Source of the DNA: Camelus dromedarius
Lineage: Eukaryota
Direction: 5' to 3'
Length of the DNA stretch: 64,000 nt
Assembly (NCBI RefSeq): GCF_036321535.1
Contig: NC_087444.1
Span: 44,764,001 to 44,828,000, forward strand
Below the pieces are notes generated by a model. It made no database searches and had not been told where the DNA came from. It worked only from the letters and a program-made list of their open reading frames with translations. The position numbers and the translations under genes are program-made. Shown here piece by piece: positions 17,975-63,161 of the stretch; position 1 is the stretch's first letter; the number at the start of each line of letters is the position of its first letter.

Positions 17975-20900
17975 ACAACTGTAGTAAACATAAGACAAAG
18001 ATGACAAGAGACAAAAAAGGGCATTATATATTAATAAAAGTTTCAATATACAAGAATATATAACAATTATAAACATTTGCATACCTAATAACAGACCAGA
18101 GAAATATATGAAACAAAAACTGACCATATGAAGGGAGAAATAAATAGCTCTACAATAATAGTCAAAGACTTCCATACCCTAGTCTCAATAAAGGATAGAA
18201 TAACCAGACAGAAATTAAGTAAGGAAATAGAGGACTTAATCCGTAGACCAACTAGATATGACATACAGAACAACAGCAGAATACACAATCTTCTCGTGTA
18301 TCCATGAGATATTTCCTAGGATAGACCATATATTAGACCACAGATTTAAGTCTCAATAGATTTTAAAAGACAGATATCATACAAATTATCTTCTTCAGCC
18401 ACAGCAGGATGAAATTACAAATCAACAGAAGTAAAACTGGAAAATTTTTTAATTTGTGGAAATTAAACAATATACTCTTGAACAACTAATGATCAAAGAA
18501 GAAATTACAAGAGAAATTTAAAAATATTTGAATTTTCTAGAGATGAATGAAAACACACAACATAGCAAAACTTCAGGATGTAGTAAAAGAAGTAAGGGGG
18601 AAATTTATAGCTATAAACACTTATATTTAAAAAACAAGTAAGATTTCAAATCAACAACTTAACTATACACTTGAAGGAACTAGAACAAGAACCAAAAAAT
18701 AGCAGAAGGAAGGAAATGATAAATATTAGAGCTGAGATCAATGAAACAAAGAATAGAAAAAATTAATGAAACCAGAAGCTGGTTCTTTGAAAAGATCAAC
18801 AAAATGGACAAAACTATAGCTACTATATGTAGCTATATATACTAAGAAAAAATGAGAGAAATTTTAAATTACCAAAATCAAATATGAAAGTGAGGACATT
18901 ACTATTCTACAGAAATGAGGATGATATGAACACTATGAACAACTGTACCCCAATAAAGTGGATAACCTAGATGAAATGGACAAATTCCTAGAAATACCAA
19001 GACTAAATCAAGAAAAAATTAAAAATCTGAGTTGACCTATAATTACTAAGGAGATTAAATCAGTCATCAAAATTCTCTCAATAAATGCCTTGGATCCAAT
19101 GACTTCACTGGTGAATTCTACCAAACATTTAAAGAACTAGTACCAGTCTTTCTCAAACTATTCCAAAAAACTGGAGGNNNNNNNNNNNNNNNNNNNNNNN
19201 NNNNNNNNNNNNNNNNNNNNNNNNNNNNNNNNNNNNNNNNNNNNNNNNNNNNNNNNNNNNNNNNNNNNNNNNNNNNNNNNNNNNNNNNNNNNNNNNNNNN
19301 NNNNNNNNNNNNNNNNNNNNNNNNNNNNNNNNNNNNNNNNNNNNNNNNNNNNNNNNATATATGAAAATCAGGTAATGTAATATACTACATTAACAGAATG
19401 AAGGAGAAAAATCACATGATCATCTCAATTGATGCATAAAATATATTCAACAAAATTCAACACCCTTTCATCATAAAAATCATTTGGCAAACCAGGAACA
19501 GAAGGAAAGTACTTTAACATAATAAAAGCCATATATGAAAACCCCACAGTAAACAGCATACTCAGTGGTGAAGAGCTGAAAGCTTCTCCTTTAAGATCAG
19601 GAACAAGGAAGGCAGAGATGCTTGCTTTTGCCACTTCTATTCCACATAGTACTGGAAGTTCTAGCCAGAGCAAGAAAAATAAAGATAAGGCATCCNNNNN
19701 NNNNNNNNNNNNNNNNNNNNNNNNNNNNNNNNNNNNNNNNNNNNNNNNNNNNNNNNNNNNNNNNNNNNNNNNNNNNNNNNNNNNNNNNNNNNNNNNNNNN
19801 NNNNNNNNNNNNNNNNNNNNNNNNNNNNNNNNNNNNNNNNNNNNNNNNNNNNNNNNNNNNNNNNNNNNNNNNNNNNNNNNNNNNNNNNNNNNNNNNNNNN
19901 NNNNNNNNNNNNNNNNNNNNNNNNACATCTANNNNNNNNNNNNNNNNNNNNNNNNNNNNNNNNNNNNNNNNNNNNNNNNNNNNNNNNNNNNNNNNNNNNN
20001 NNNNNNNNNNNNNNNNNNNNNNNNNNNNNNNNNNNNNNNNNNNNNNNNNNNNNNNNNNNNNNNNNNNNNNNNNNNNNNNNNNNNNNNNNNNNNNAGTCAC
20101 ATATCTATACACTAACAATGAAAAATCTGAAAACTACAAAAATAATTCCATTTACAATAGCATCAAAAATCATTTAGAAATTAACTTAACCAAGAAGGTG
20201 AAAAACTTGCACAATGAAAACTACAAAATATTGCTGAAACAAATTAAAGAAGACATAAGTANNNNNNNNNNNNNNNNNNNNNNNNNNNNNNNNNNNNNNN
20301 NNNNNNNNNNNNNNNNNNNNNNNNNNNNNNNNNNNNNNNNNNNNNNNNNNNNNNNNNNNNNNNNNNNNNNNNNNNNNNNNNNNNNNNNNNNNAACTTATC
20401 CTTTATGGAGTTTCCTTAAAAACTAAAAACACAATTTTCACATGATCCAGCAATTCCATTTCTGGGTATATACTCCAGAGAATTGAAAGCAGGTCTCAAA
20501 GTGACATTTGTACACCCGTGTTCATAGCATTATTCACAATATCTGAACTGTGGAAGCAACCCAAGTGTTCAATGATGGATGAATGGNNNNNNNNNNNNNN
20601 NNNNNNNNNNNNNNNNNNNNNNNNNNNNNNNNNNNNNNNNNNNNNNNNNNNNNNNNNNNNNNNNNNNNNNNNNNNNNNNNNNNNNNNNNNNNNNNNNNNN
20701 NNNNNNNNNNNNNNNNNNNNNNNNNNNNNNNNNNNNNNNNNNNNNNNNNACCCAAATTAATAGAGATATAAAGCAGAATAGTAGTTGCCAAGAGCTGGGG
20801 AGTGGGGGTGGGAACGGGGTTTTTGTTTAATGGGTACAGAACTTCAGTTTTACAAGGTGAAAAGAGTTTTGGAGGTGGATGGTAGGGATGGTTGCACATT

Positions 20901-35707: not shown

Positions 35708-35860
35708 NNNNNNNNNNNNNNNNNNNNNNNNNNNNNNNNNNNNNNNNNNNNNNNNNNNNNNNNNNNNNNNNNNNNNNNNNNNNNNNNNNNNNNNNNNNNN
35801 NNNNNNNNNNNNNNNNNNNNNNNNNNNNNNNNNNNNNNNNNNNNNNNNNNNNNNNNNNNN
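35708..35860. other. Assembly gap (153 N)
   Basis: Seen directly. Confidence 0.95.
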
Positions 35861-41693: not shown

Positions 41694-43149
<1,456 letters not shown>

Positions 43150-43398: not shown

Positions 43399-46300
43399 CG
43401 CGGGGGGCCTCCCCCTTGGCGCCCGCCAGCGCGGGGGGACTTTGTGCCGGGCGGCACGCAACGACCCGGCCTCCCTGCCCGCCTCTTCCCAGTTTTCCAC
43501 ACCGTCCGCAGCCACCCGGAAACCAGCACGCGTGTCCTCACCGACTTCCCCACCCCCGGCCCCTGAAACTCTGCCCTAAGTTTCGCCCTTTCCCGGAGCC
43601 CGTGTTCAACCCAGCCTCGCGCTCACGTCCCAGTCTTGGCCCCCCTTCCCCCAGGATGCCTGTCCTAGTCCCCAGGATGGTCTTTAGTCAGCGCTTCTCT
43701 AACGGTCCTCCTGTAACAGCAACGCGGCGAACACAGCCTCTGCCTCCCTTCCTTCCTTTCTCCACGGCTGAATGGATGGATGGGCACATTTGACTGGGTG
43801 CTCCTTTGTCTAAACTTTTCAGAATATTCCTCAGCCTAGCTGGTCACCCTACTCCAGGACCGAGGTTCCCAAAGCATACAATGCCCCTAGGGAAGGGATC
43901 ATTTTAGGAGAAAGGCAGCCCTGGCATTAAACAACAAAGCAAGACAGGTGGCTATTTCCCTTTCTGTATTCCTGACAATTTAAATACCATGGAGTCTGTG
44001 CCAAGCCTTGCTTAACCACTTATGTTCCTTAAATTCTAACAGCAACCCTAAAAGGAAATACTGCTTAGGAGCCCGTTTCCAAAAGGCAATGCTACTTAGA
44101 GTAGAAGGCAGCTGCTAACCCAGGGTCCCAGTGGTGGGGGTGATGCCCTGGACCTGATTCTGGTCACTTCCCCAAGGGAAAGAGAGAGTCAGTGACAACG
44201 TGTCCCTTTGGCCCAGAGGCATGTCTTCAGCACCTCTCTACTGCATTAGCTTAATCCTGGCAGTGACAAAAGTGGTAGAAAAGGAAAGTATATGTTTTTG
44301 TGGCTACCATCTATGTCTAGAAACTAATTCTCATATTAAGTAGTGGTAAAGAGTGCTTTTCATATAAATAAATTTACACACACATACACAATGTTAAATA
44401 AAATCCTGGTGCAGGTGAGAGCAGAAGTGGCAGGCATCCTCCTGCATCTGTTTCAGGGACATCCACTGTCTTGACCTTGGTTTTATATCCCTAGTGCCAA
44501 TTCCTCTTTTATGGGAAAGAGGATAACCCTCTCTGGGCAACAGTGCAAGCTCACATGGTTGTTCAGGGATCACCGGAAACAAAGTCATACACACCAGCTC
44601 TGGCTTATTTGTCTGGAAGGAGGAAAATATCTCCTATGAAATGAGAGATAATAATAAAATAAGATCTAATGTTACAGGTTAATCACCATGTGCCAGGCTT
44701 TGTTCTAAGGTTGCTGCATGTATTAAATTCTTAAATAGCCAGATGCTGTTATTTTGCACTCTTACAGCAGAGGTGACTGAGCCATAGAGAGGTTATGTCA
44801 CCTGGCTATAAGTGACACAGGTGGGACTTGCACTCATGCAGGCCGACTTCAGCTTCATGGCCTCACCCACCACCATCACCATGACATCACACAAAAGATG
44901 AGGACACGACACCTGGCAGAGTCAACCATGGAAAAGCACTGAGCAGGCAGTAAGATCCCTCTGCACAGCTCTGTGACCTCTCTGGGCTTCAGACTCCCGT
45001 CTCTCCAGCCAGGAGCACAACTGGACTGTCTCAAAGGACCCTTCCAGCTTTGAATAAGGAGAGGCAGGATTCAGCATTCAGTGACATCATAATAGCATCC
45101 TATGGCCAGGAGGTGAGTCAACTGTGGTGTAGGTTCAGATCTCTGACTATGAGCTGTGTGACCATGGGCAGGTTGCTTACCCTCTCTGGAATTGGCACAA
45201 TCACTCCAGTCCCTGCATGTTCACTCTCTCACTGGCTCCTGGCAGATTGAATGACACCAAGGTGGGGAAAGTCTTCTGTGTCTGTCCAAATGATGTGGCA
45301 GCATCTGTCCCAAAGGGCTTATGCAGGTCATCCACACTTCCCTTGACACCAGAAGGCAAGGTTCCAATGTCATCTCTAATTTCCACTCAGTAATGCTTAC
45401 AAATCAATGAGCCTTTCTCCAGGAGCTTCTTGGGGCTAAAAGGCTTCTCTGTGCACAAATGTCAGTGTGGATATAGTGATCATAATGGCCACTGTTCAGG
45501 AAGCCTAGATAGGACCAGACCATTATCTCACTTAATCCCCACATTGAAATATAATCCCTTTTATAGTAATGAGGAAGTGGAAACTCAGAGGTTATCAGTG
45601 ACTTGCCCAGGTCAGGAAGTGGCAAGGAGGCTGTGAACATGGATGCCTGACACCAAAACCAATGCACCCAGCACAAGCTGGCTCCTGAAAGCCCCTCTTC
45701 ACACAGGGCACCTGTGGGCAATCTTGGGCCTGACTTCTGAGCCACAGGCCTCCTCTTTCTCTTTGACTGAACATCAAATAGCAATTCCCTCCACAGTCAG
45801 GGGACTAACACTTTGTGTATATTACTATTCACTCAGCACACACTCCTTCCCAATAAACACCACCACGCCCTGCAAACTGCAGAGTAACATCCCCCCGCAG
45901 AGGAAGACATGAAGTCCTTCATCCTGAACCAAGTCTCAGATACACTGCCTCTTGCTGGGAAATTCCCTCCAAATCCAATGCCTTGGCTGGTTTCAAGAGC
46001 CAAAGGCTGGATTTTGAGGGAAGGGCAGATTTCAGCCTAACCTAGGGAGGAACTTCCAAAGATTCAGAGCCAAGTCACCACAGGGAGCTGTGAGGAGTGG
46101 TAGCTGTCTTGTCAGTGGCACTGGGCAAGCCAAGATCGATGTTCCCTGTGGGGATGCTGGGGACAGAGTGTATGTGATCCACACAGTGGGGCATTTGTGA
46201 GGTGTTTCCAGGACTCCTGCACGCCTTCAACGAATATATGTGCAGCATATAAAAGCCTCTAATTTAAAAAATTTGTTCTTCACATATTTATGTGATTATG

Positions 46301-46851
46301 TGTTTGGAAATGAAAAATGAATTTTAGATATTGTGTCCTTTAACAGTTTTTTTCTTAGCAATTCTTTTTATTCATTTAAATTTGAAACTGTCCTAGAAAA
46401 GAAAAATAGGACTCTCTATAATGTTTTAGAAGCAAGCTCTGTACAGAAATCAACCAAGTGGGGAGTTGGATTCCATCCCCTCTGGGTACTTTTGAAGGCT
46501 CATATCACTGTGGACTGAGTATGGCAGGGTCCCCTAGAGAATGAAAATGAGAAGTTGAGAAGTTTCTGTGACATCAATACTCATAATGAGAATAGAGGGG
46601 AACCTGTGTATGTACGATGCCCTATGTCCTCTGGTCAATACTTTCATTTTGAGCTGAGAACCTGAAGCTCAGAGAGGTAACCTGACCTACTTAACCCACT
46701 CAGTGTATGGGGGCTAATATTTGCTTCAGAACCCAGGTCTCTGCACTTCTAGTCTTAATTTCCCACCCGAGACCTGGTGGGCATGAAGTCATAAAGTCTC
46801 TTATTTCCAAATAAAATAAAGAAAAATAAAGCCAGAATAAAGCTAACAACT

Positions 46852-46857
46852 TTTATT
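46852..46857 (-). terminator. MT-B polyadenylation signal AATAAA
   Basis: tttatt on plus, followed on the minus strand by a U-rich downstream element. Confidence 0.8.
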
Positions 46858-46975
46858 ATAATTCACATATTTCACAGAGAAAGAAATGTAGCATTAGGTC
46901 AGGTTGTATGAAAAATAATAAATGCAGACTTGTCCATGTTGCTCTGTCTACATGTGGGGCAACGTCTCCCCGACT

Positions 46976-48410
<1,435 letters not shown>

Positions 48411-48508
48411 CTGGAGGCGAGGTGAGACTGGAGGTCCAAAGGAACGGGCGATGCAGAGGCACTTGTCTGATGGGAGGCGTGTTGGAGCCCATGAGCCAGC
48501 GTGTTCTG

Positions 48509-48952
48509 ATTATACCCAGAGGAGGCGGCCCGAGTGCAGAGGCCCCGCCCCTGCCTTGCACGCGCCCCGCGGATCAGCGCGGCCCGCAGCGCCCGGGGCC
48601 GGGCTGTGAGCAAACACGCGGGGCCGGCCGGCCGAGCGCAGGACTCCAGGAAGGCGTCGGGGCTCCGTGCGCACCGCGGGAACCGCCCCCTTGGCGACCG
48701 CCAGCGCGGTGGACCGGGGGGGGGGGGGGGGGGCGGTACTTTGTGTGCCGGGCGGCAAGCAGTGGCTCAACCTCCCTACCCTCCTCCTTCTACTTTTCCA
48801 GGTGGTTTTTCCGGAACCCAGCCCCTGTATCCAGGCTGTCTTCCCCACCCCGCTCCTTCACACCGCTATTCTCGCCCTTTCCGGGAGCCCGTGTGCAACC
48901 CCATCCTCTAGCTCAGGTCCCAGGCTTGGCGGGAGCCTGGGAGCTGTGTGCA
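48509..48952 (-). promoter_or_regulatory. MT-B promoter
   Basis: Variant TATA (TATAAT) 48509-48514; MRE cores at 48532, 48557, 48634, 48667, 48891 and 48946; G18 run at 48716-48733. Confidence 0.85.
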
Positions 48953-51371
48953 GAGACCGCCCTCCCCGACCCCAGGATTGCATGTCCCGTCCCCAGCATA
49001 GTCTTTAGTCAGCGTTTCTCTATCGTTTCTTGTGTAACAGCCACGCAGCGAACTTAAGCCTCTGCCTCCCATCCTTCCTTCCATTCTCCAGGACTGAATG
49101 GTTAGATAAGCACATTTTACCAGGCTCCTTTGCCTAAACTTTCCAGGGGCTTTCCTCAGCCTGACGGGTCCACCCCACTTCAGGATGGAGGTTCCCAAAG
49201 TATGGATGCCCCCCAGGGAAGCGATCATTGTAGGTGATGAGCAGAACTGGCATTCAGTAACAAAGAAAAAAAAAGCGGATATTTCCCTTACAGTATTCCT
49301 GCAGTCTCTGCCAAGCCTTGCTCAATCAATTTTGCTCTTTGAATTCTAACAGCAACTCTAAAGGGAAATAGTAGTTAGAAGCCCATTTACCTGAGGCTAA
49401 ACTAAATAGAGCAGGAGGCTACTAACCCAGGGTCCCAGTTCTGAAAAGTGATGTCCTGGATCTGATTTCTGTCACCTCCCAAGAGAAAAAGAGCCTCTGG
49501 CCCAGAGGTGTGGCCTCAGCACCTCTCTACTGCTTTGCACTCAATCCTGGCAGTGACAGAAGTGTTAGAAAAGGAAAATAATTATTTTTTTGTGGCTACT
49601 ATCTATGTCTAGAAGTAAACTGATTCTCATATTCAGTAGTGGTAAAGAGGTTGCTTTTCATATAAATAATTTGGGGATAATACACACACAACATACATAC
49701 AATATTAAGTAAGTAAAATTCTGGCGCAGGTGAGGGCAGAAAAGCCATGCATCTTCCTGCATCTGTTTGGAGGACGTGGACTGCCTTGATGGTGGCTTTA
49801 TATCCCTAGTGCCAATTCCTCTTTTGTGAGGAGGAGGATAACCCTGTCTGGGCAATGGTACATGCTCACGTGACTGGTGAAGACAACACGGAACACTCAG
49901 CCATGCACATCAGCCCTGGCTTACTTGTCTGGAAGTTGAAAAATGTCTTCTCTGCTATTAAGGATATTAATAAAGTAATAACTGACATAGATTACATGCT
50001 CTGTGCCTGGCTTCATTCTAGGTACTTTATATTTATTAAATTCCTTACTCCTACAAGCCAGACAATATTATTTTGCCCTTTTACAGCAGGACAGTCTGAG
50101 CCAGAGAGGGTATGTCATGTGACTATAAGTGACCCAGGTGGGACTTGCACTCATGCAGGCTGACTGCAGCTTCATGGCCTCACCCACCACCGGGCACCAT
50201 GACATCACACAAAAGATGAGGACACTGAACACCTGGCACAGAGGTAGCCATGGAAAAGCACTGAGCAGGCAGTGAGATCCCTCTGCACAGCTCTGTGACC
50301 TCTCTGGGCTTCAGATCCCCATCTCTCCAGCCAGGAGCACAATTTGACTGTCTCAAAGGACCCTCCCAGATTTGAATAAGGAAAAGCAGGATCCAGCATC
50401 CAGGGACATCATCAGCCACTTTTGGCAAGTGAGTCAGCTATAGCAGAGGTTCAGATCTCTGACAATGAGATTTGGGTGGGGTGCTTAACGTCTCTGAAAC
50501 GATGCAAAAGCACCTAAGCCACTGCACATTCACTCATTTACTGGTTCCTATGCAGTTCAAATGACACGAAGGGTAGGAAAGGCTTTTGTTTCTGTCCAAA
50601 TTATGTGGCAGCATCTTGTCCCAGTGGCTTATTGGAGGTCAACCACATACACCCTGGCACTTGATCACAGCAAGGTGAGATCATTTCTAGCCTCAGCCCA
50701 GAGTAATGCTTCCAATGCAATGGAGCTTTTTCCTGGAACTTTATGGAAGATAAAAATGTTCTGTCCCCACGAATGTTGGTAGATATAATCATCAAAATGA
50801 CCACTGTTTATAAACCCTAGCTAGGAGCCGGACAGCATCTCATGTAATCTGCCACATTGAAATATAATCTACTTTATACAAATGAGGAAATGGAGGCTAA
50901 GAAATTATCATGAATCTGCCCAGGTCACAAGGCCAGGAATTGACAAGGTGGCTGTGAACCAGGATGCCTGACACCAAAACCCATGCACTCAGCACAGGCT
51001 GGCTCCTGAAAAACCCTTCTTTACACAAGGCATTTGCAGGCAAGTGTGCACAGAACTCCTGGGCCACGTGATGACTCTTTCTTCTTGATTGAATACCAAA
51101 TAGCAATTCCCTCCAAAAATAGCCAGGGAGAGAAACCATTTTAATATATTCCAAGTCACTGAATGCCTCACTCCTTCCTAATAAAGATCACCACACCCTC
51201 CAAATAGCAGAATAGCCATCGCCCTGCACGGGCAGATACAGTAATCTGTCTGGCATCAATTCTCATGTATACTTTCTCTTGCTGGGAGGTGACTGGCCTA
51301 TTCCCTCTAAATCCCTAGAACTTTTCTGGTTTCATGCAAAGCAAAACAGAGCCAGAATAAAATCAACAACG

Positions 51372-51377
51372 TTTATT
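51372..51377 (-). terminator. MT-C polyadenylation signal AATAAA
   Basis: tttatt on plus. Confidence 0.8.
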
Positions 51378-51496
51378 ACAATACATGTATTTCATAGAAA
51401 AAGGAATGCAGCATCAAGTCAAGTTGTATGAAAAAATTTAAAATGCAGGTTTGTCCATGCTGTTTTGTTTACATCTGGGGCCTGCTCTCCCCACCA

Positions 51497-52916
<1,420 letters not shown>

Positions 52917-53014
52917 TTGGAGCCGAGGTGAGGCAGGAGGTCCAAAGAAAGTGCAGAAGAAGATCTATTTGTCCGGTGGGAGGCGTGTTGGAGCCCAGGA
53001 GTCAGTGTGTTCAG

Positions 53015-53485
53015 TTTATACCCAGAGAGCACGGCCTGGGCGCAGAGGCCCCGGTCCGGGCGCAGAAGCCCCGCCCCCCGCCTTGCACCCGCTCCGCGGA
53101 TCCGCGCCGCCCGCAGCCACCGGGGCCGGGCTGAGAGCAACACGCAGGGCCGAGCTCAGGACTCCAGGAACTCGGCTGGTCTCCGTGCGCACCGCGGGGG
53201 CCTCCCCCTTGGCGCCCGCCAGCGCGGAGGGACTTTGTGTGCCGGGTGGAAAGCAGTGGCCCAGCCTCCCTGCCCACGCCTTCCCAATTTCTCCGCGATC
53301 TGCAGACACCGGGGTTCCTGGCTTTTCCGGGAAACCTGCCGGAGGCGTGTCCTCACCTTCTCCACCCCCCACCCCACCCCCGCCCCCGAAACTCTGCCCT
53401 AAGTTTCACCCTTTCCAGGAGTCCGTGTTCAACCCCAGCCTCGCCCTTAAGTGGCTGGCTTGGCGGAGCCCGGGAGTTGAGTGCA
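53015..53485 (-). promoter_or_regulatory. MT-C promoter
   Basis: TATAAA 53015-53020; MRE cores at 53038, 53058, 53084, 53185 and 53479; STAT-type TTCCGGGAA 53325-53333. Confidence 0.85.
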
Positions 53486-54138
53486 GAGACCTGTGGTGGA
53501 TGTGACCTTCACCCCAATACCCCTCTCTCCTCTTCCCTCAGCATTGCCTGTCCTGTTCCCATGATAGTCTTTAGCGTTTCTCCTGCAACAGCAACGCAGC
53601 GAGCGCAGACCTCTTCCTCCCTCCCTTCTTTCCATTCTCCATGGCTGAATGGATAGATGGGCACATTTGACTGGATGCTCCTTTGCTTAAACTTTCCAGA
53701 ATATTCCTCAGCCTAGCTGGTCCACTCCACTCCAGGCTGGAGGTTCCCTAATCATGAGATGCTCTTAGGGCATAAATCATTTTAAATGCTAGGCAGACCT
53801 GGCATTAAATAACAAAGCAAAACAAGAGGTTATTTCCCTTTCAGTATTCCTGACAATTACATACCATTGAGTCTGTGTCAAGCCTTGTTAATCACTTTTG
53901 CTTTTGAATTCTGAGGGCAATTCTAAAGGGAAATACTAATTAAGAGTCCCTTTCCCAAAGGCTGAACTACATCAGCACAAAAAGTTACTGACTCAGGGTC
54001 CCAGTATTGGGAAGTGGTGCCCTGGGTCTGATTCCTGTCACTTCCCAAGGGAAACAGTGAGAAAGCTTCCCTTTGGCCCATAGGTATGTCTTCAGCACCT
54101 CTCTACTGCCTTGCAGTCAATCCTGGCAAAAGTGATAA

Positions 54139-54186
54139 AATATATATATGTATATTTATATAAATATATATATTATATATATATAA
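54139..54186. repeat. Imperfect (TA)n microsatellite
   Basis: aatatatatatgtatatttatataaatatatatattatatatatataa; present only in the unit upstream of MT-C. Confidence 0.85.
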
Positions 54187-56749
54187 TTTTGTGGTTACCT
54201 TCCCTTCAATGTCTGAAAGAAGACGGACTCTCATTCTCAGTCACTATAAATAATCTGCTTTTTATATAAATATATTTAAGAAAATATGAATCATTAGAAA
54301 AACATTCAGTAAATCCTGGTGCAGGTGACAGCAGAAATGGCAGGATCCTTCTCTATCTGTTAGGAAGATCAGGACTCTCTTGTTTATGGCTTGATATCCC
54401 TTTGCCAATCCCTCTTCAAGTGAAGAGAGGATAACCCTTTCAGGACAACTGGTCACATGCTTACGTGGTTGATGAAGACAAGAGAGGACACACAGCCATG
54501 CACCCCAGTCCTGGTTTATTGGTCTGGAAGTTGAAAAATGTCTCCTATGCTATTCATGGTAATAATAAAGTAATATCAAATATTATAGGTTACTCGCTGT
54601 ATATTATCATCTAAGTTCTTTTTATGTATTATTTATCCCTAGCCCCAAAATGACTATTCTGCTCTCTTAAAGCAGAGCAGGCTGAGCCACAGAGAGATTG
54701 TATCACCTGGCTATAAGTGACACAGGTGGGGGTTGCACTTATGCAGGCTGACTGCAGCATCGTGCCCTCACCCACCACCGGGCATCAATGCATCACATGA
54801 AAGATGAGGACACTGAACACCTGGCACAGACGCAGCCACGGAAAAGCATTGAACAGGCAGTCAGATCCCTCTGCACATCTCTGTGACCTCTCTGGGCTTC
54901 AGACTCCCATCTCTCCAGCCAAGAGCACAACTGGACTGTCTCAGAGGACCCTTTCAGCTCTGAATAAGAAAAAGCAGAATTTAGCATCCAGTTAGATCAT
55001 AATCAGCATCCTGTAGCTAGGAAGTGAGATCATATAAGTTCAGATCTCTGACTATGAGCTGTGTGACCTTGTCCAGATTGCTTAACCTCTCTTGAATTGG
55101 CACAATCACTCCAGCCCCTGCATGTTCACTTTCTCCCTGAATCCTTTGTAAATCAAATGACATGACAGGTGGGAAAGGTTTCTGACTCTGTCTAAATGCT
55201 GTGGCAGCGTCTTTCCCCATGGGACTTATTAGAGGACATCCACACTCCCTCTGGCACCAGAGAAGCAAAGTTCCTATCATCTATAGCCTCATGCTGAGTA
55301 TATTTTGAAACAAATGAGCTTTTCTCCAGGAGCTTCTTGGGATCTGAAAGAAATCTTATCCTCACTAATGTCCATGTGCATATAGTGACCATAGAGGAAA
55401 CTGTTGAGAAAGCCCAAGCTAGGAGCCAGGCCACCATCTCATTTAACTGTCCACATTGAGATATCATGTCTTTTACACAAATGAGGAAACGGAGGCTGAG
55501 AATATGGATGACTTGCCAGGGTCTCATGGCCAGGAGGTGGCAAGGTGACTGTGAACCAGGATGCCTGACACCCAAACCCAAGCACCCGGCACAGCCTGAC
55601 CTCTGAAATACCTTGTTCACACAGGGTGGCTGTGGGAAAGTGTGGTCCCAACTCCTGGGCCACGTGGCCCGTCCTTCTCTTTGATTGAACATCAAATAGC
55701 AATTTCTTCCACAAGCAGCCAGGGAGAGTAACCATTAGCATTAATAACAAAGTCACTGGGTACCGTATTCCTGCCAAATAGGCACTACCACACCCTCCAA
55801 ATTGCAGAATAGTCTACACGGGCAGACATGAAGTCTTTTGGAACCAATTTTCAGGTACACCCCATCTTGCAGGGAAATGGCTGGGTGATTCCTCCCAAAT
55901 CCCTAGTGACTTTGTTGGTTTCAAGCAGCCAAGGGCTGGATTTTGAGGGAGGAACTTCCCAGGATTCAGAGCCCAGTCAACATAGGGAGCTGTCAGGGGT
56001 AGCGGGTGTCCTCTCTGTGTCACTGGGCAAATCAAGACTGATGCTCCCCATGGGATGGGGGCAGTGCTACACAAGGTGTATGTGGTCCACACAGCGGAGC
56101 ATTTGTGAAGTGCTTCCAGTGCTCATAAACGGCCTTGATGAACATATGTGTAGCCTTTAAGTCTTATTTTTCTTCTTGGTTCTTCATATAGAAACGAAAT
56201 TATGTGTGTTGAACCTAAAAATGGGTTTTATATATTGTGTCCTCTAAAACTTTTTCTTAGTAATTCATTTTATTTACCATAGTTTAAATCTGTCGGTCTT
56301 AGAAAATAAAACCTAGTCCTTCAACAGTGTTTTAGAAGTAAGCACTGTGTAGAGGTAAAACAGCTGGGGCTTGAATTTCATCCTGTCTGAGTTCTTTCAT
56401 AGGCTAACATCTTTGAGGACTGAAGTTTGGCAGATGATAAGAGAGAGTGAAAATGAGAAACTGAGAAGTTTCTCTGCCATCAACACTTACAATGAGGACA
56501 GAGGTGAACCCATGTGCCTCATTCCCTTATCTCATGTGGATGATGCTTTCATTTCTATCTGAAAACCTGAAACTCAGAGAGGTAACCTGACCTGCTCAAG
56601 GCACTTACTGTGTTAGGGACAACAAATTAGGTCCAGAACCCATGTCTCAGCACTTCCAGCCCAATCCCCCACCCCAGTCCTGGTGACCATAATGTATGTT
56701 ACTTCCAAGACACACCAACGAAAACAGAGCTAAAATAAAGTCAATGAAT

Positions 56750-56755
56750 TTTATT
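56750..56755 (-). terminator. MT-D polyadenylation signal AATAAA
   Basis: tttatt on plus. Confidence 0.8.
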
Positions 56756-56876
56756 ACAATTCACATATTTTATAGAAAAAGGAATGCAGCATCTGGTCAG
56801 AGTAGTAGGAATAAATTTTGAAATGCAAGTTTGTCCATGCTGTTTGATCTATATCTGAGGCAGGGTCTCCCCAACT

Positions 56877-58364
<1,488 letters not shown>

Positions 58365-58436
58365 TTGGAGCCGAGGTGAGGCTGGAGGTTTAAAGCACGT
58401 AGCAAAACAGATTCACTCGTCTGGCGGGAGGCGTGC

Positions 58437-58891
58437 TGGAGTCTGGGAGGCCCCGCCCCCGCCTTGCACCCTCCCGGCGGATCCGTGCCGCCAGCAGCGC
58501 CCGGGGCCGGGCTGTGCGCACCTGGCCGGGATGAGGTCACGATTCCGTGAGCAAGGCTGGAGTTGGTGGCAACCGCAGCGCCGGGGGCCGGGTTGTGAGC
58601 AATATGCCGGCCGAGCGCTAGGTTCTCCCAGCTCACCTAAAACTGTTGTACACACCCAGGGCGGTGTTTGGCGCCTGTTCGCGGGGAGGGACAGTTAGCC
58701 AGAAGGTACGCTGTGTCCTAGCCTCCCTGCCCTCCCCTTCCCAATTTTCCCAAGGATGGCCGCCGCCGGTGTCCCCAGGTGTTCCGGGAACCCGTGTCCT
58801 CGCCGTCTTCCCCAACCTCCGCCCGCCCCCGCCCCCCACCCCCCACCGCACCTCTGTCCTCAGTGTCGCCCTTTCCAGGAGCTCGTGTGCA
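58437..58891 (-). promoter_or_regulatory. MT-D promoter lacking TATA box and MRE-a
   Basis: No TATA between the initiator-like agcacgcc (about 58437) and the GC box (58451-58460). MRE cores at 58465, 58514 and 58885; GRE-like 58705-58719; STAT-type TTCCGGGAA 58782-58790. Confidence 0.8.
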
Positions 58892-61339
58892 ACCTCAACA
58901 CTTGCTCACTTTCCAGGCATGGCTGGAGCCTGAGTTGTATGCAGAGATCTGTGATGGATGCGACCTTCACCATCAGTCTCCCGCCCCGAACCTGTCCCCA
59001 AGATTGCCTGCCCTGGCCCCTACGATGGTTTTTAGTCACCGTTTCTCCGGTTTCTCCCTTAACAGCAACGCAGCGAACACAGGCCTCTGTCACCCTTCCT
59101 TCCTTACATTCTTCATGGCTGAACGGATGGATGGGCACATTTATCTAGGTGCTCTTTTGCCTAAACTTTCAAGGGGGTTTCCTCAACCTCTCAGATCCAC
59201 CACTCCAGGATGGAGTCCCCAAAGCATGGGATACCCCCCGCCCAGGAGAGGGATCATTGTAGGTGATAGGCAGATCTGAGATTAAATAACAAAACAAGTG
59301 GTTGTTTCCCTTTACTCAGCGGTGGGAAGAGCAGAGTTGGCAGTCAGATCCCTCTGCATGGCTCTGTGGCCTCTCTGGGCTTCAGACTCCCATCTCTCCA
59401 TTCGGGAGCACAACTGGACTATCTCAACCCTTCCAACTCTGAATAAGGAGAAGCAGGACTTAGCATCCAGTTAGATCATAATCAGCCATCTTTGGCAAAG
59501 AGGTAAGACAACTGAAGTATAGGTTCAGACCTCTGAATGTGATCTCGGTACCCTTGGCCAGGTCGCTTTAACTTTGTGTAATTGGCACAGTAACTCCAGC
59601 CCCTGCAAGTTCTTTGTCACTCATTCAATGTAGATCAAGTGACATGAAGGGTGGGCAAGTCTTTTGTGTTTGCCCAAGTGCTGTCACAGCATCTTATCCT
59701 AGGTGAGCTATTGCAAGTCAACCACATTCCTTCCAGCACACATTCAGTAAATTTCCAGTCAAACTTTAACCTCCAACCCAGAGTAATGCTTGCAAATCAA
59801 CTAGCCTTTTCAAGAGCTTGTTGGGCTTCAACAAGATTCTGTCCCAGAAAAGTCACTGTGAACAGAAGGATGATAGTAGACACTGTTTATTGAGTCCTAG
59901 TGAGAAGCCAGGCCACTCTCACTTAATACCACATAGAGATATAATCTTTTTATAGAAAATGGAGACTTAGAGTGGTTGAGCAACTTACTCAGGTTACACA
60001 GCAGGTAAGTGCCTTATTGGTCTGTGACCCAGGACTGCCTGACACCAACGCCCACGCACCCAACACAGGCTGGCTTCTGAAAGCCTCTCTTCACACGGGA
60101 CACCTGTGGGTAAGCGTCCTGAGTTTGGGCCACGTAACTCATCTTTCTCTTTGACTTTACATCAAATAGCAAATCCCTCCAAAACTTGTCAGGGGGACCT
60201 AGCCATTACCATTATTTATAAGTCACTCAATGCCTCACTCCTTCCTGATAAACACCACCACAACTTCATAACTGCAGAATCTGCCTTCACCCTGCTCAGG
60301 CAGACATGAAATCTTTCATCTGGAATCGGTTCCCAGGTACTTTCCCTCTTGTTGGGGAATGTCTGGGCATTACCTCCAAATTTCTAGTCATTTTGCTGAT
60401 TTCAAGTAGTCATGGGCTGGATTTTGAAGAAAAGGTAGATTTCAGCCTGAGTAATGTGAGAACCTCCAAAAATTCAGAGCCAAGTCAGCACAGGGAACTC
60501 TCAGGGGTGGCAGCTGTCCTGTCAGTGGTGATGGGCAAGCCAAGATTGATGTCCCCTGTAGGGCTGTGGGGGCAGTGCTTCTCCAGGTGTGTGTGGTCCA
60601 CACCTTGGGGCATTTGTAAAGTGTTTTCAGTATTCAGTGCACACCTTCAATGAATAAATGTGTAGTTTTAAATTTAAAAAAGTTTTCCTGTCTTACTCTG
60701 TTCCTTATATATTTATTCAAACGTGTCTGTTAAACAAAAACTGGGTTTTGTATATTGTGTCCTTTTACATTTTTCTTAGTAATTCACTTTATTTTATATT
60801 ACCAGAGTTTAGGTTTGTGAAGACAGAAAATAAAAACCATGGCTAGAGAATTCACATCAATCTTTTGGCGCAGGAATTTTGAGTCTCCTAGGTAGGGATT
60901 TAGGTACTAGGGGTTTGATTCCAAATTCTTTACAGTCTATCAAGCCTGAAATCTATGAAGAACTGAAGTTGTCCAGGGAAGTCAAAGGATGGAAAATGAA
61001 GAATTGAGAAGTCACCAGCCCTTGCCATCCACCAACCCTTGACATAAGAACAGAGGGGACCCTGTGTCTGCTCCAAATCATTATAGCATCTGGTGTAACG
61101 CTCTTCCATCTCACAGAAGATGAACTTAGTGAAGAAGTGTGTCTTGCTTTAGGTACTCAGTTTATTATGCATTAGCATTCTGTTCCATTACCCAAGTCTC
61201 TGCACTTCTCATCCAGTCTCCTATACCAGCCCTACCTAGATGGCACACAAGCCATTATTCCCACACACAGGAAAGAAAGCAGTCAGAAATAGTGTCAGAA
61301 AGAGCAGTCAGAAAGAGTCAGAATAGTGTCAACAATTTT

Positions 61340-62714: not shown

Positions 62715-63161
62715 TTTATACCCTGAGGAGGCAGCCCGGGTGCAGCGGCCCCTTCCCCACCTTGCACCCGCCCAGCCTGGCTGTGCGCACCTGGCTGGGC
62801 GGAGCGCAGGGTTCCGTGAGCAAGGCTGGGTCTGTGAGAAAGGCTGGGTCTGTGTGCAAGGCTGGGTCTGTGCGCAGTGCCTGGGACGTCCCTTTGGCCC
62901 TAGAACTCACGGAAGGACTGTGTGCAGGCGGCATTCCGTGTCCCAGCCTCCCTGCCCGCCCCTTCCAAATTTTCCCAAGGTAGGCAGTCACCTTTGTTCT
63001 GGGATCTTCCTGGAACTCTGTCCTCGCTCTGTTTGCTACCCCAGGTCCCCGTGCCTTTGTCCTCAGCTACGTCCTTTCCTAGGGCCCGTGTGCAGCCCTA
63101 GCCTGTGCTCACATCCCCGGCTTACGGGGAGCGGTGGAAAGTCCTGAGGGTGTTGTGTGCA
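62715..63161 (-). promoter_or_regulatory. MT-E promoter
   Basis: TATAAA 62715-62720; nine MRE cores (62738, 62763, 62783, 62802, 62852, 62870, 62920, 63088, 63155); STAT-type TTCCTGGAA 63007-63015; proximal GC box degenerate (ggccccttcccc). Confidence 0.85.

Follow-up and report, generated by a model that had tools for sequence, protein, structure and literature searches.

The stretch of camel DNA analysed here (the window; 64,000 nucleotides of Camelus dromedarius, contig NC_087444.1, forward-strand positions 44,764,001 to 44,828,000) contains five metallothionein (MT) genes of the MT1 type, arranged in tandem and all on the minus strand. Their initiation codons lie at positions 43149 (MT-A), 48410 (MT-B), 52916 (MT-C), 58364 (MT-D) and 62617 (MT-E), and every copy has three exons (28, 66 and 92 coding nucleotides), canonical splice sites and 61 codons. 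Further MT-like exons were sought across the window beyond these five genes and none were found; two runs of N, at 19178-20749 and 35708-35860, represent masked sequence or gaps. An MT2 gene lies outside the window, 5.8 kb upstream of MT-E (L008:4216-4928). A literature search for work on camel MT paralogs returned no papers.

The coding sequence of MT-D is 88-94% identical to those of its sister paralogs MT-A, MT-B, MT-C and MT-E. Introns and spacers of the paralogs are 20-25% apart, and the duplications are therefore old; the similarity of the coding sequences reflects constraint, gene conversion or both. All four intergenic spacers (43900-61330) are homologous, with 69-74% identity. The long spacers between MT-D and MT-C and between MT-B and MT-A align over their full length of 3 kb, and the spacer between MT-C and MT-B is a shorter version of them, an arrangement that fits an old two-gene periodicity of the array.

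Gene structure and protein of MT-D

MT-D retains the architecture of a metallothionein gene throughout. On the minus strand, the coding part of exon 1 occupies 58337-58364, exon 2 encodes the remainder of the beta-domain (57689-57754), and the coding part of exon 3 encodes the alpha-domain and the stop codon (56877-56968). The 3′UTR (56730-56876) contains an AATAAA signal at 56755-56750. The coding sequence is split after codon 9 and after codon 31, both in phase 1, within a tandem cluster, as expected of an MT gene. In agreement with the first-pass annotation, the frame (61 codons), the GT/AG splice sites, the poly(A) signal and the CpG richness (observed/expected ratio 0.68) are all intact, as is the Kozak context, and MT-D carries no disabling lesion of the reading frame or of a splice site such as would define a pseudogene. 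A homologue search with the 61-residue protein gave 118 matches, all of them members of PF00131 (best E = 1.8e-19, with 84% identity over 100% of the query), and this homology over the full length places the product in that family. Its translation is also free of F, W, Y and H, as is characteristic of metallothioneins.

The protein nevertheless departs from its sisters at an invariant position. Codon 5 (58352-58350) reads AGC in MT-D and TGC in the other four copies, so that the five-copy comparison bears out the earlier report of a Cys5Ser replacement. Within the M3S9 cluster, Cys5 is a terminal ligand and does not bridge metals. Serine is the mildest substitute for a thiolate ligand, and a partly functional MT-D protein is conceivable. 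Cys-to-Ser mutagenesis studies of MT reportedly exist, and our literature search for such papers found none. MT-D thus has 19 of the 20 invariant cysteines, and all described functional mammalian MTs keep 20 (PMC3081807). Three further replacements are private to MT-D, namely Thr14Ile in exon 2 and Val39Thr and Gly40Ser in exon 3.

An exact-protein look-up found the MT-D protein in three chromosome-scale assemblies, which represent the dromedary and the two Bactrian camels. The locus in GCA_036321535.1 is identical to the window base for base; GCA_009834535.1 and GCA_048773025.1 depart from the window at approximately 0.7% of sites and share most of these differences. Exact look-ups with the MT-C and MT-E proteins likewise returned matches in Camelus only, and a cluster look-up with the five MT proteins gave no match for any of them. 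The AGC codon and the promoter deletion described below are the same in all three assemblies, and in sequencing runs of DNA a fraction of 0.96-1.00 of the words of the locus is present. We therefore rejected an error of assembly or sequencing as the source of either lesion, an explanation to which we attach practically no probability: both changes are genuine and, judged by the three assemblies, fixed.

The same comparison brought out a difference in another copy. Dromedary MT-A (exons within 41694-43149) departs from the two other Camelus assemblies at 4 of its 186 coding bases (43138, 42516, 41778 and 41700), the change at 42516 giving Ser20 for Thr. Relative to the local background of 0.66%, this is a roughly threefold excess, for which gene conversion or rapid change may be responsible.

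The MT-D promoter

Pairwise alignment of MT-D with MT-A, MT-B and MT-E reveals a single clean gap of 46 bp immediately upstream of the retained initiator region; the gap is longer against MT-C because that gene has an extra tandem module. The segment missing from MT-D corresponds to MT-A 43277-43232 and comprises MRE-a, whose core in the paralogs is TGCGCCC or TGCACYC, and the TATA box, ending just upstream of the initiator region. A CTC triplet flanks the gap on both edges, and the junction (58446-58450, minus strand) can accordingly be placed anywhere from 58450/58449 to 58447/58446. Within this three-base ambiguity, the alignments agree with the original description of a loss at 58449/58450 of exactly the TATA box and MRE-a, and the same junction aligns without gaps in the two other Camelus assemblies. 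Since all four paralogs keep MRE-a together with a TATA-type box (TATAAT in the case of MT-B), and since the promoter of camel MT2 keeps a TATAAA box, the gap is a derived deletion in MT-D, which is the sole copy of the five without a TATA-type box. The first-pass annotation had presented MRE-a as the main MTF-1 element of mammalian MT promoters; this is true of human MT2A and is not known to be a general rule.

The remaining promoter of MT-D (58365-58800, minus strand) is a CpG island that lacks TATAAA, with 65% GC and a CpG observed/expected ratio of 0.68 over -400 to +31. This ratio falls between those of MT-E (0.42, the lowest) and MT-A (0.90), so the island is not eroded. The GC box GGGGCGGGG (58451-58459, minus strand; GGGCGG at -94) lies directly upstream of the initiator region, and a reverse MRE core, GGGTGCA (the 'MRE-b' of the earlier description), is retained at 58465-58471 on the minus strand (-107). 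These positions confirm that the GC box and MRE-b have moved to the former place of the TATA box with the initiator region kept. Further upstream, alignment identifies a direct repeat of an MRE-bearing module with a spacing of 81 bp (58485-58610, minus strand). Its two copies, 58485-58529 and 58566-58610, are 76% identical; the proximal copy retains the palindromic MRE core TGCGCAC (58514-58520, minus strand; -156/-157), a consensus core that is absent from MT-A, MT-B and MT-C, and the core of the distal copy is the non-consensus TGCTCAC.

Two MRE cores thus lie within 330 bases of the MT-D initiation codon, compared with three in MT-A, four each in MT-B and MT-C, and seven in MT-E. Alignments inspected by eye show that the distal palindrome TGCGCAC of MT-A, MT-B and MT-C has become TGTGTAC in MT-D, and that a TGCGCTC like that of MT-E has become TGACCTC. 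MT-D therefore lacks the arrangement of several TGCRCNC cores near a TATA box that marks an MTF-1/MRE-type promoter. Its sister paralogs share its length and exon structure and have homologous spacers, and differ from it in possessing 20 cysteines, a TATA-type box, MRE-a and 3-7 MRE cores rather than two.

Changes of other kinds are seen in the promoters of three sisters. In the MT-C promoter (53040-53090), the module of GC box and MRE-a is tandemly duplicated, placing TGCGCCC cores at -148 and -128. The MT-B promoter has TATAAT for TATAAA (48510-48540) and a run of about 19 C (near 48700) that is absent from the other paralogs. In the MT-E promoter (62780-62930), repeated modules of the type CCCAGCCTTGC(A/T)CACAGA account for the seven MRE cores within 330 bases.

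The human MT2A promoter uses the same element grammar as the MT-D family (MREs, GC box, TATA box and initiator). It has a GRE, MRE-a, a TATA box and a core-promoter single-nucleotide polymorphism, -5A/G (rs28366003); MT-D is without the TATA box and MRE-a. Camel MT2 combines its TATAAA box with several MRE cores, and approximately 330 bases before its ATG it contains a string with TGTTC, GGTGTTCTGTGTTCG, which sits roughly at the position of the human MT2A GRE.

GRE-like and STAT-like strings

The first-pass annotation had raised the prospect that two gained GREs had placed MT-D, after the loss of its metal-responsive core promoter, under the control of glucocorticoids. Both strings exist at the positions given for them: GGTACGCTGTGTCCT at 58705-58719 on the plus strand, which corresponds to -341 to -355 from the ATG, and AGGACACTGGGTCCC in intron 1 at 58073-58087, also on the plus strand. 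In each, one half-site is a good TGTCCT and the other preserves its G/C core; the string upstream of the gene matches GGTACAnnnTGTYCT with one mismatch and is one base from the sequence that the first-pass annotation gave for the human MT2A GRE. Both are also conserved in the three Camelus assemblies save for one spacer base, 58712 of the upstream string, which differs in the two other assemblies.

Their frequency is, however, that expected by chance. For the core GnACnnnnnGTnC, the window contains 9 occurrences, compared with 8.75 expected from shuffled sequences. The stricter pattern GGTACAnnnTGTYCT with at most one mismatch occurs twice, compared with 0.69 expected, and a count of two is reached by 19 of 100 shuffles, which agrees with the caution, voiced at the outset, that one-mismatch GREs are not rare by chance; the second occurrence lies in intron 1 of MT-C. 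Scored against the GR palindrome AGAACAnnnTGTTCT, both MT-D strings agree at 8 of 12 positions, a score shared by 259 15-mers of the 64-kb window (about 1 per 250 bp). TGTYCT half-sites are not enriched around MT-D either, with five compared with 3-7 in the paralogs. Conservation within Camelus is uninformative at a divergence of 0.66%, and neither string lies at the position of the MT2A GRE. MT-D consequently has no GRE match above the sequence background of the window. The claim that these GREs are not intact in the sister paralogs stands position by position; MT-B, MT-C and MT-E nevertheless have core matches of their own.

The best GRE-like palindrome of the MT array is found elsewhere, in intron 1 of MT-C (52826-52840), where GGGACATTCTGTCCT scores 9 of 12 and contains the full GnACAnnnTGTnC core. 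A STAT site specific to MT-D was also considered and rejected, because MT-C and MT-E have equivalents of TTCCCGGAA (-426) at matching positions. With GRE matches at chance level and a STAT-like site shared with two sisters, the glucocorticoid/STAT rewiring is unsupported, and we regard control of MT-D through the two strings as very improbable.

Transcription, constraint and the state of MT-D

Evidence for transcription comes from the content of sequencing runs. The query was a stretch of 290 bases at the 3′ end of the gene (56585-56874), of which 145 belong to the 3′UTR and 145 lie beyond the poly(A) region; none of its 31-mers occurs a second time in the window. If transcripts end 10-30 nucleotides past AATAAA, 0.40-0.48 of these words should be present. 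Six DNA runs contain 1.00 of them, and in six others, from five studies, 0.96-0.98 of the words of the MT-D locus are present. In five small RNA-like runs from two studies (four from one; a single run of 43 million letters from the other), whose type was guessed, the fraction is 0.41-0.48, a value that does not locate the words within the stretch. Two of these five runs also contain 0.19-0.31 of the words of the whole gene, compared with 0.15 expected for the mature mRNA, and in six runs recorded as RNA parts of the gene stretch are present and the 3′UTR stretch is not. Assembly of a single-copy genomic locus would hardly be expected from runs so shallow, and genomic DNA would continue past the poly(A) site. 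It is therefore probable that some samples contain a polyadenylated MT-D transcript, and the gene may be well expressed somewhere. No Logan contig with the exact MT-D protein was found; the same holds for MT-C and MT-E, so this result is uninformative.

The substitutions private to each copy provide a second line of evidence. In the five-way comparison, MT-D has four private replacements (C5S, T14I, V39T and G40S) and three private silent changes, and the private replacements of the other copies number one in MT-A, none in MT-B and MT-C, and two in MT-E. MT-D is also the sole copy of the five to have lost a cysteine. Its private rate is nonetheless lower in coding sequence (3.8%) than in introns (8.4%; p = 0.026); during much of its history the gene has accordingly been under constraint, or kept similar to its sisters by gene conversion. 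The ratio of coding to intron private rates is 0.45 for MT-D, compared with 0.14 for MT-B, 0.07 for MT-C and 0.63 for MT-A. The private 4:3 count corresponds to an omega of about 0.5 with a very wide error, and counts in a gene of 186 bp are too small to tell relaxed from maintained selection. The coding sequence of MT-D is identical in all three Camelus assemblies; a background divergence of 0.66% predicts only about one change over the 186 bp, and this identity is therefore without power.

Human MT1 genes provide a precedent for lesions of this type. Five of the 13 human MT1 copies are pseudogenes, and of the 12 disabling mutations in them, 8 are substitutions of an invariant cysteine, with Cys5Tyr as one example (PMC3081807). 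Like MT-D, the pseudogenes at human 16q13 (MT1L, MT1DP, MT1JP, MT1CP and MT1IP) are tandem MT1 duplicates that keep three exons, and their earliest lesions are mostly replacements of invariant cysteines (PMC3081807). Unlike them, MT-D is free of stop codons, frameshifts, aromatic residues and splice-site lesions; its Cys-to-Ser change is the mildest replacement, and its plainest lesion, the loss of the TATA box and MRE-a, is regulatory. MT-D arose independently of the human pseudogenes, in the camelid lineage. Full-length mammalian MT-like reading frames with missing cysteines are also common among annotated proteins. An alpaca 'metallothionein-1E-like' protein (P0001; C26W), a pangolin protein (P0014; C5Y and C7H) and an MT1DP-like protein of gibbon (P0036) are, like the MT-D product, 61-residue members of PF00131 with one or more cysteines replaced; they represent other paralogs and species and are known here from their protein sequences alone. 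A further alpaca protein, 'metallothionein-1C-like' P0010 (L004:10001-10300, GCA_048564905.1), is encoded by an intronless 99-codon reading frame with Cys48Tyr, a processed retrocopy that lies between two Peptidase_M2 (ACE-like) gene calls.

The first-pass annotation had left MT-D as either a dying gene or a hormone-rewired isoform. With the second option unsupported, pseudogenisation in progress gives the best fit, on the grounds of the promoter deletion, the smallest number of MREs, the sole cysteine loss, the highest number of private replacements and the human precedent. We favour, by a slight balance of probability, the reading that MT-D is a real MT1 paralog in early functional decay that is still transcribed. 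A microhomology-mediated deletion of 46 bp took the TATA box and the proximal MRE, point changes removed further MREs from the promoter, and one of the nine cysteine ligands of the beta-domain was exchanged for serine. What remains of the CpG-island promoter, with its GC box, two MRE cores and initiator region, probably drives some transcription and yields a correctly polyadenylated mRNA. Induction by metals would be expected to fall short of that of the paralogs, and the protein, if made, would be an MT with 19 cysteines whose three-metal cluster is weakened. By analogy with the human copies, the pattern of MT-D resembles the usual early decay of MT1 duplicates, and the gene would be an ordinary decaying, or at best weakened, paralog.

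Several observations argue against decay, among them the RNA-like runs compatible with an MT-D transcript, the coding private rate below that of the introns as a sign of past constraint, and the intact CpG island, reading frame, splice sites, Kozak context and poly(A) signal. These same signs of polyadenylated transcripts, intact structure and slower private change in coding sequence, together with the extra promoter module and its consensus palindromic MRE and the identity of the protein in three Camelus assemblies, would also suit a maintained isoform. Such an isoform would have a TATA-less Sp1/CpG-island promoter that gives it a different, more constitutive and less metal-driven expression, and would produce a 19-cysteine protein of altered metal affinity or lability in the beta-domain. 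We consider this possible, if somewhat doubtful: the identity within Camelus carries no weight at the divergence given above, the 4:3 count points to the weakest constraint among the five copies (only MT-A has a comparably high ratio of coding to intron rates), and described functional mammalian MTs do not dispense with any of their 20 cysteines (PMC3081807). Transcription is in turn no proof of protein function, as at least one human MT1 pseudogene, MT1DP, is reported to be expressed as non-coding RNA (PMC5824791). A more specific version, in which MT-D is a maintained camel-specific isoform, TATA-less, MRE-poor and strongly transcribed, that acts as a labile donor of zinc or copper through its weakened beta-cluster, appears unlikely to us.

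The main value of this analysis is a correction, in that the apparent hormone rewiring of MT-D through gained GREs is a chance pattern. The remainder is ordinary birth-and-death turnover of MT1 duplicates, caught early in camels, where regulatory damage (TATA box and MRE-a lost) is combined with damage to the ligand set (Cys5Ser) in an otherwise intact and probably transcribed gene. If its expression and its protein were confirmed, MT-D would offer a test of an MT promoter without TATA box and MRE-a, and likewise of an eight-cysteine beta-domain. Should MT-D turn out to be a maintained isoform, it would constitute a natural experiment on how far the canonical promoter elements and ligands of an MT can be dispensed with.
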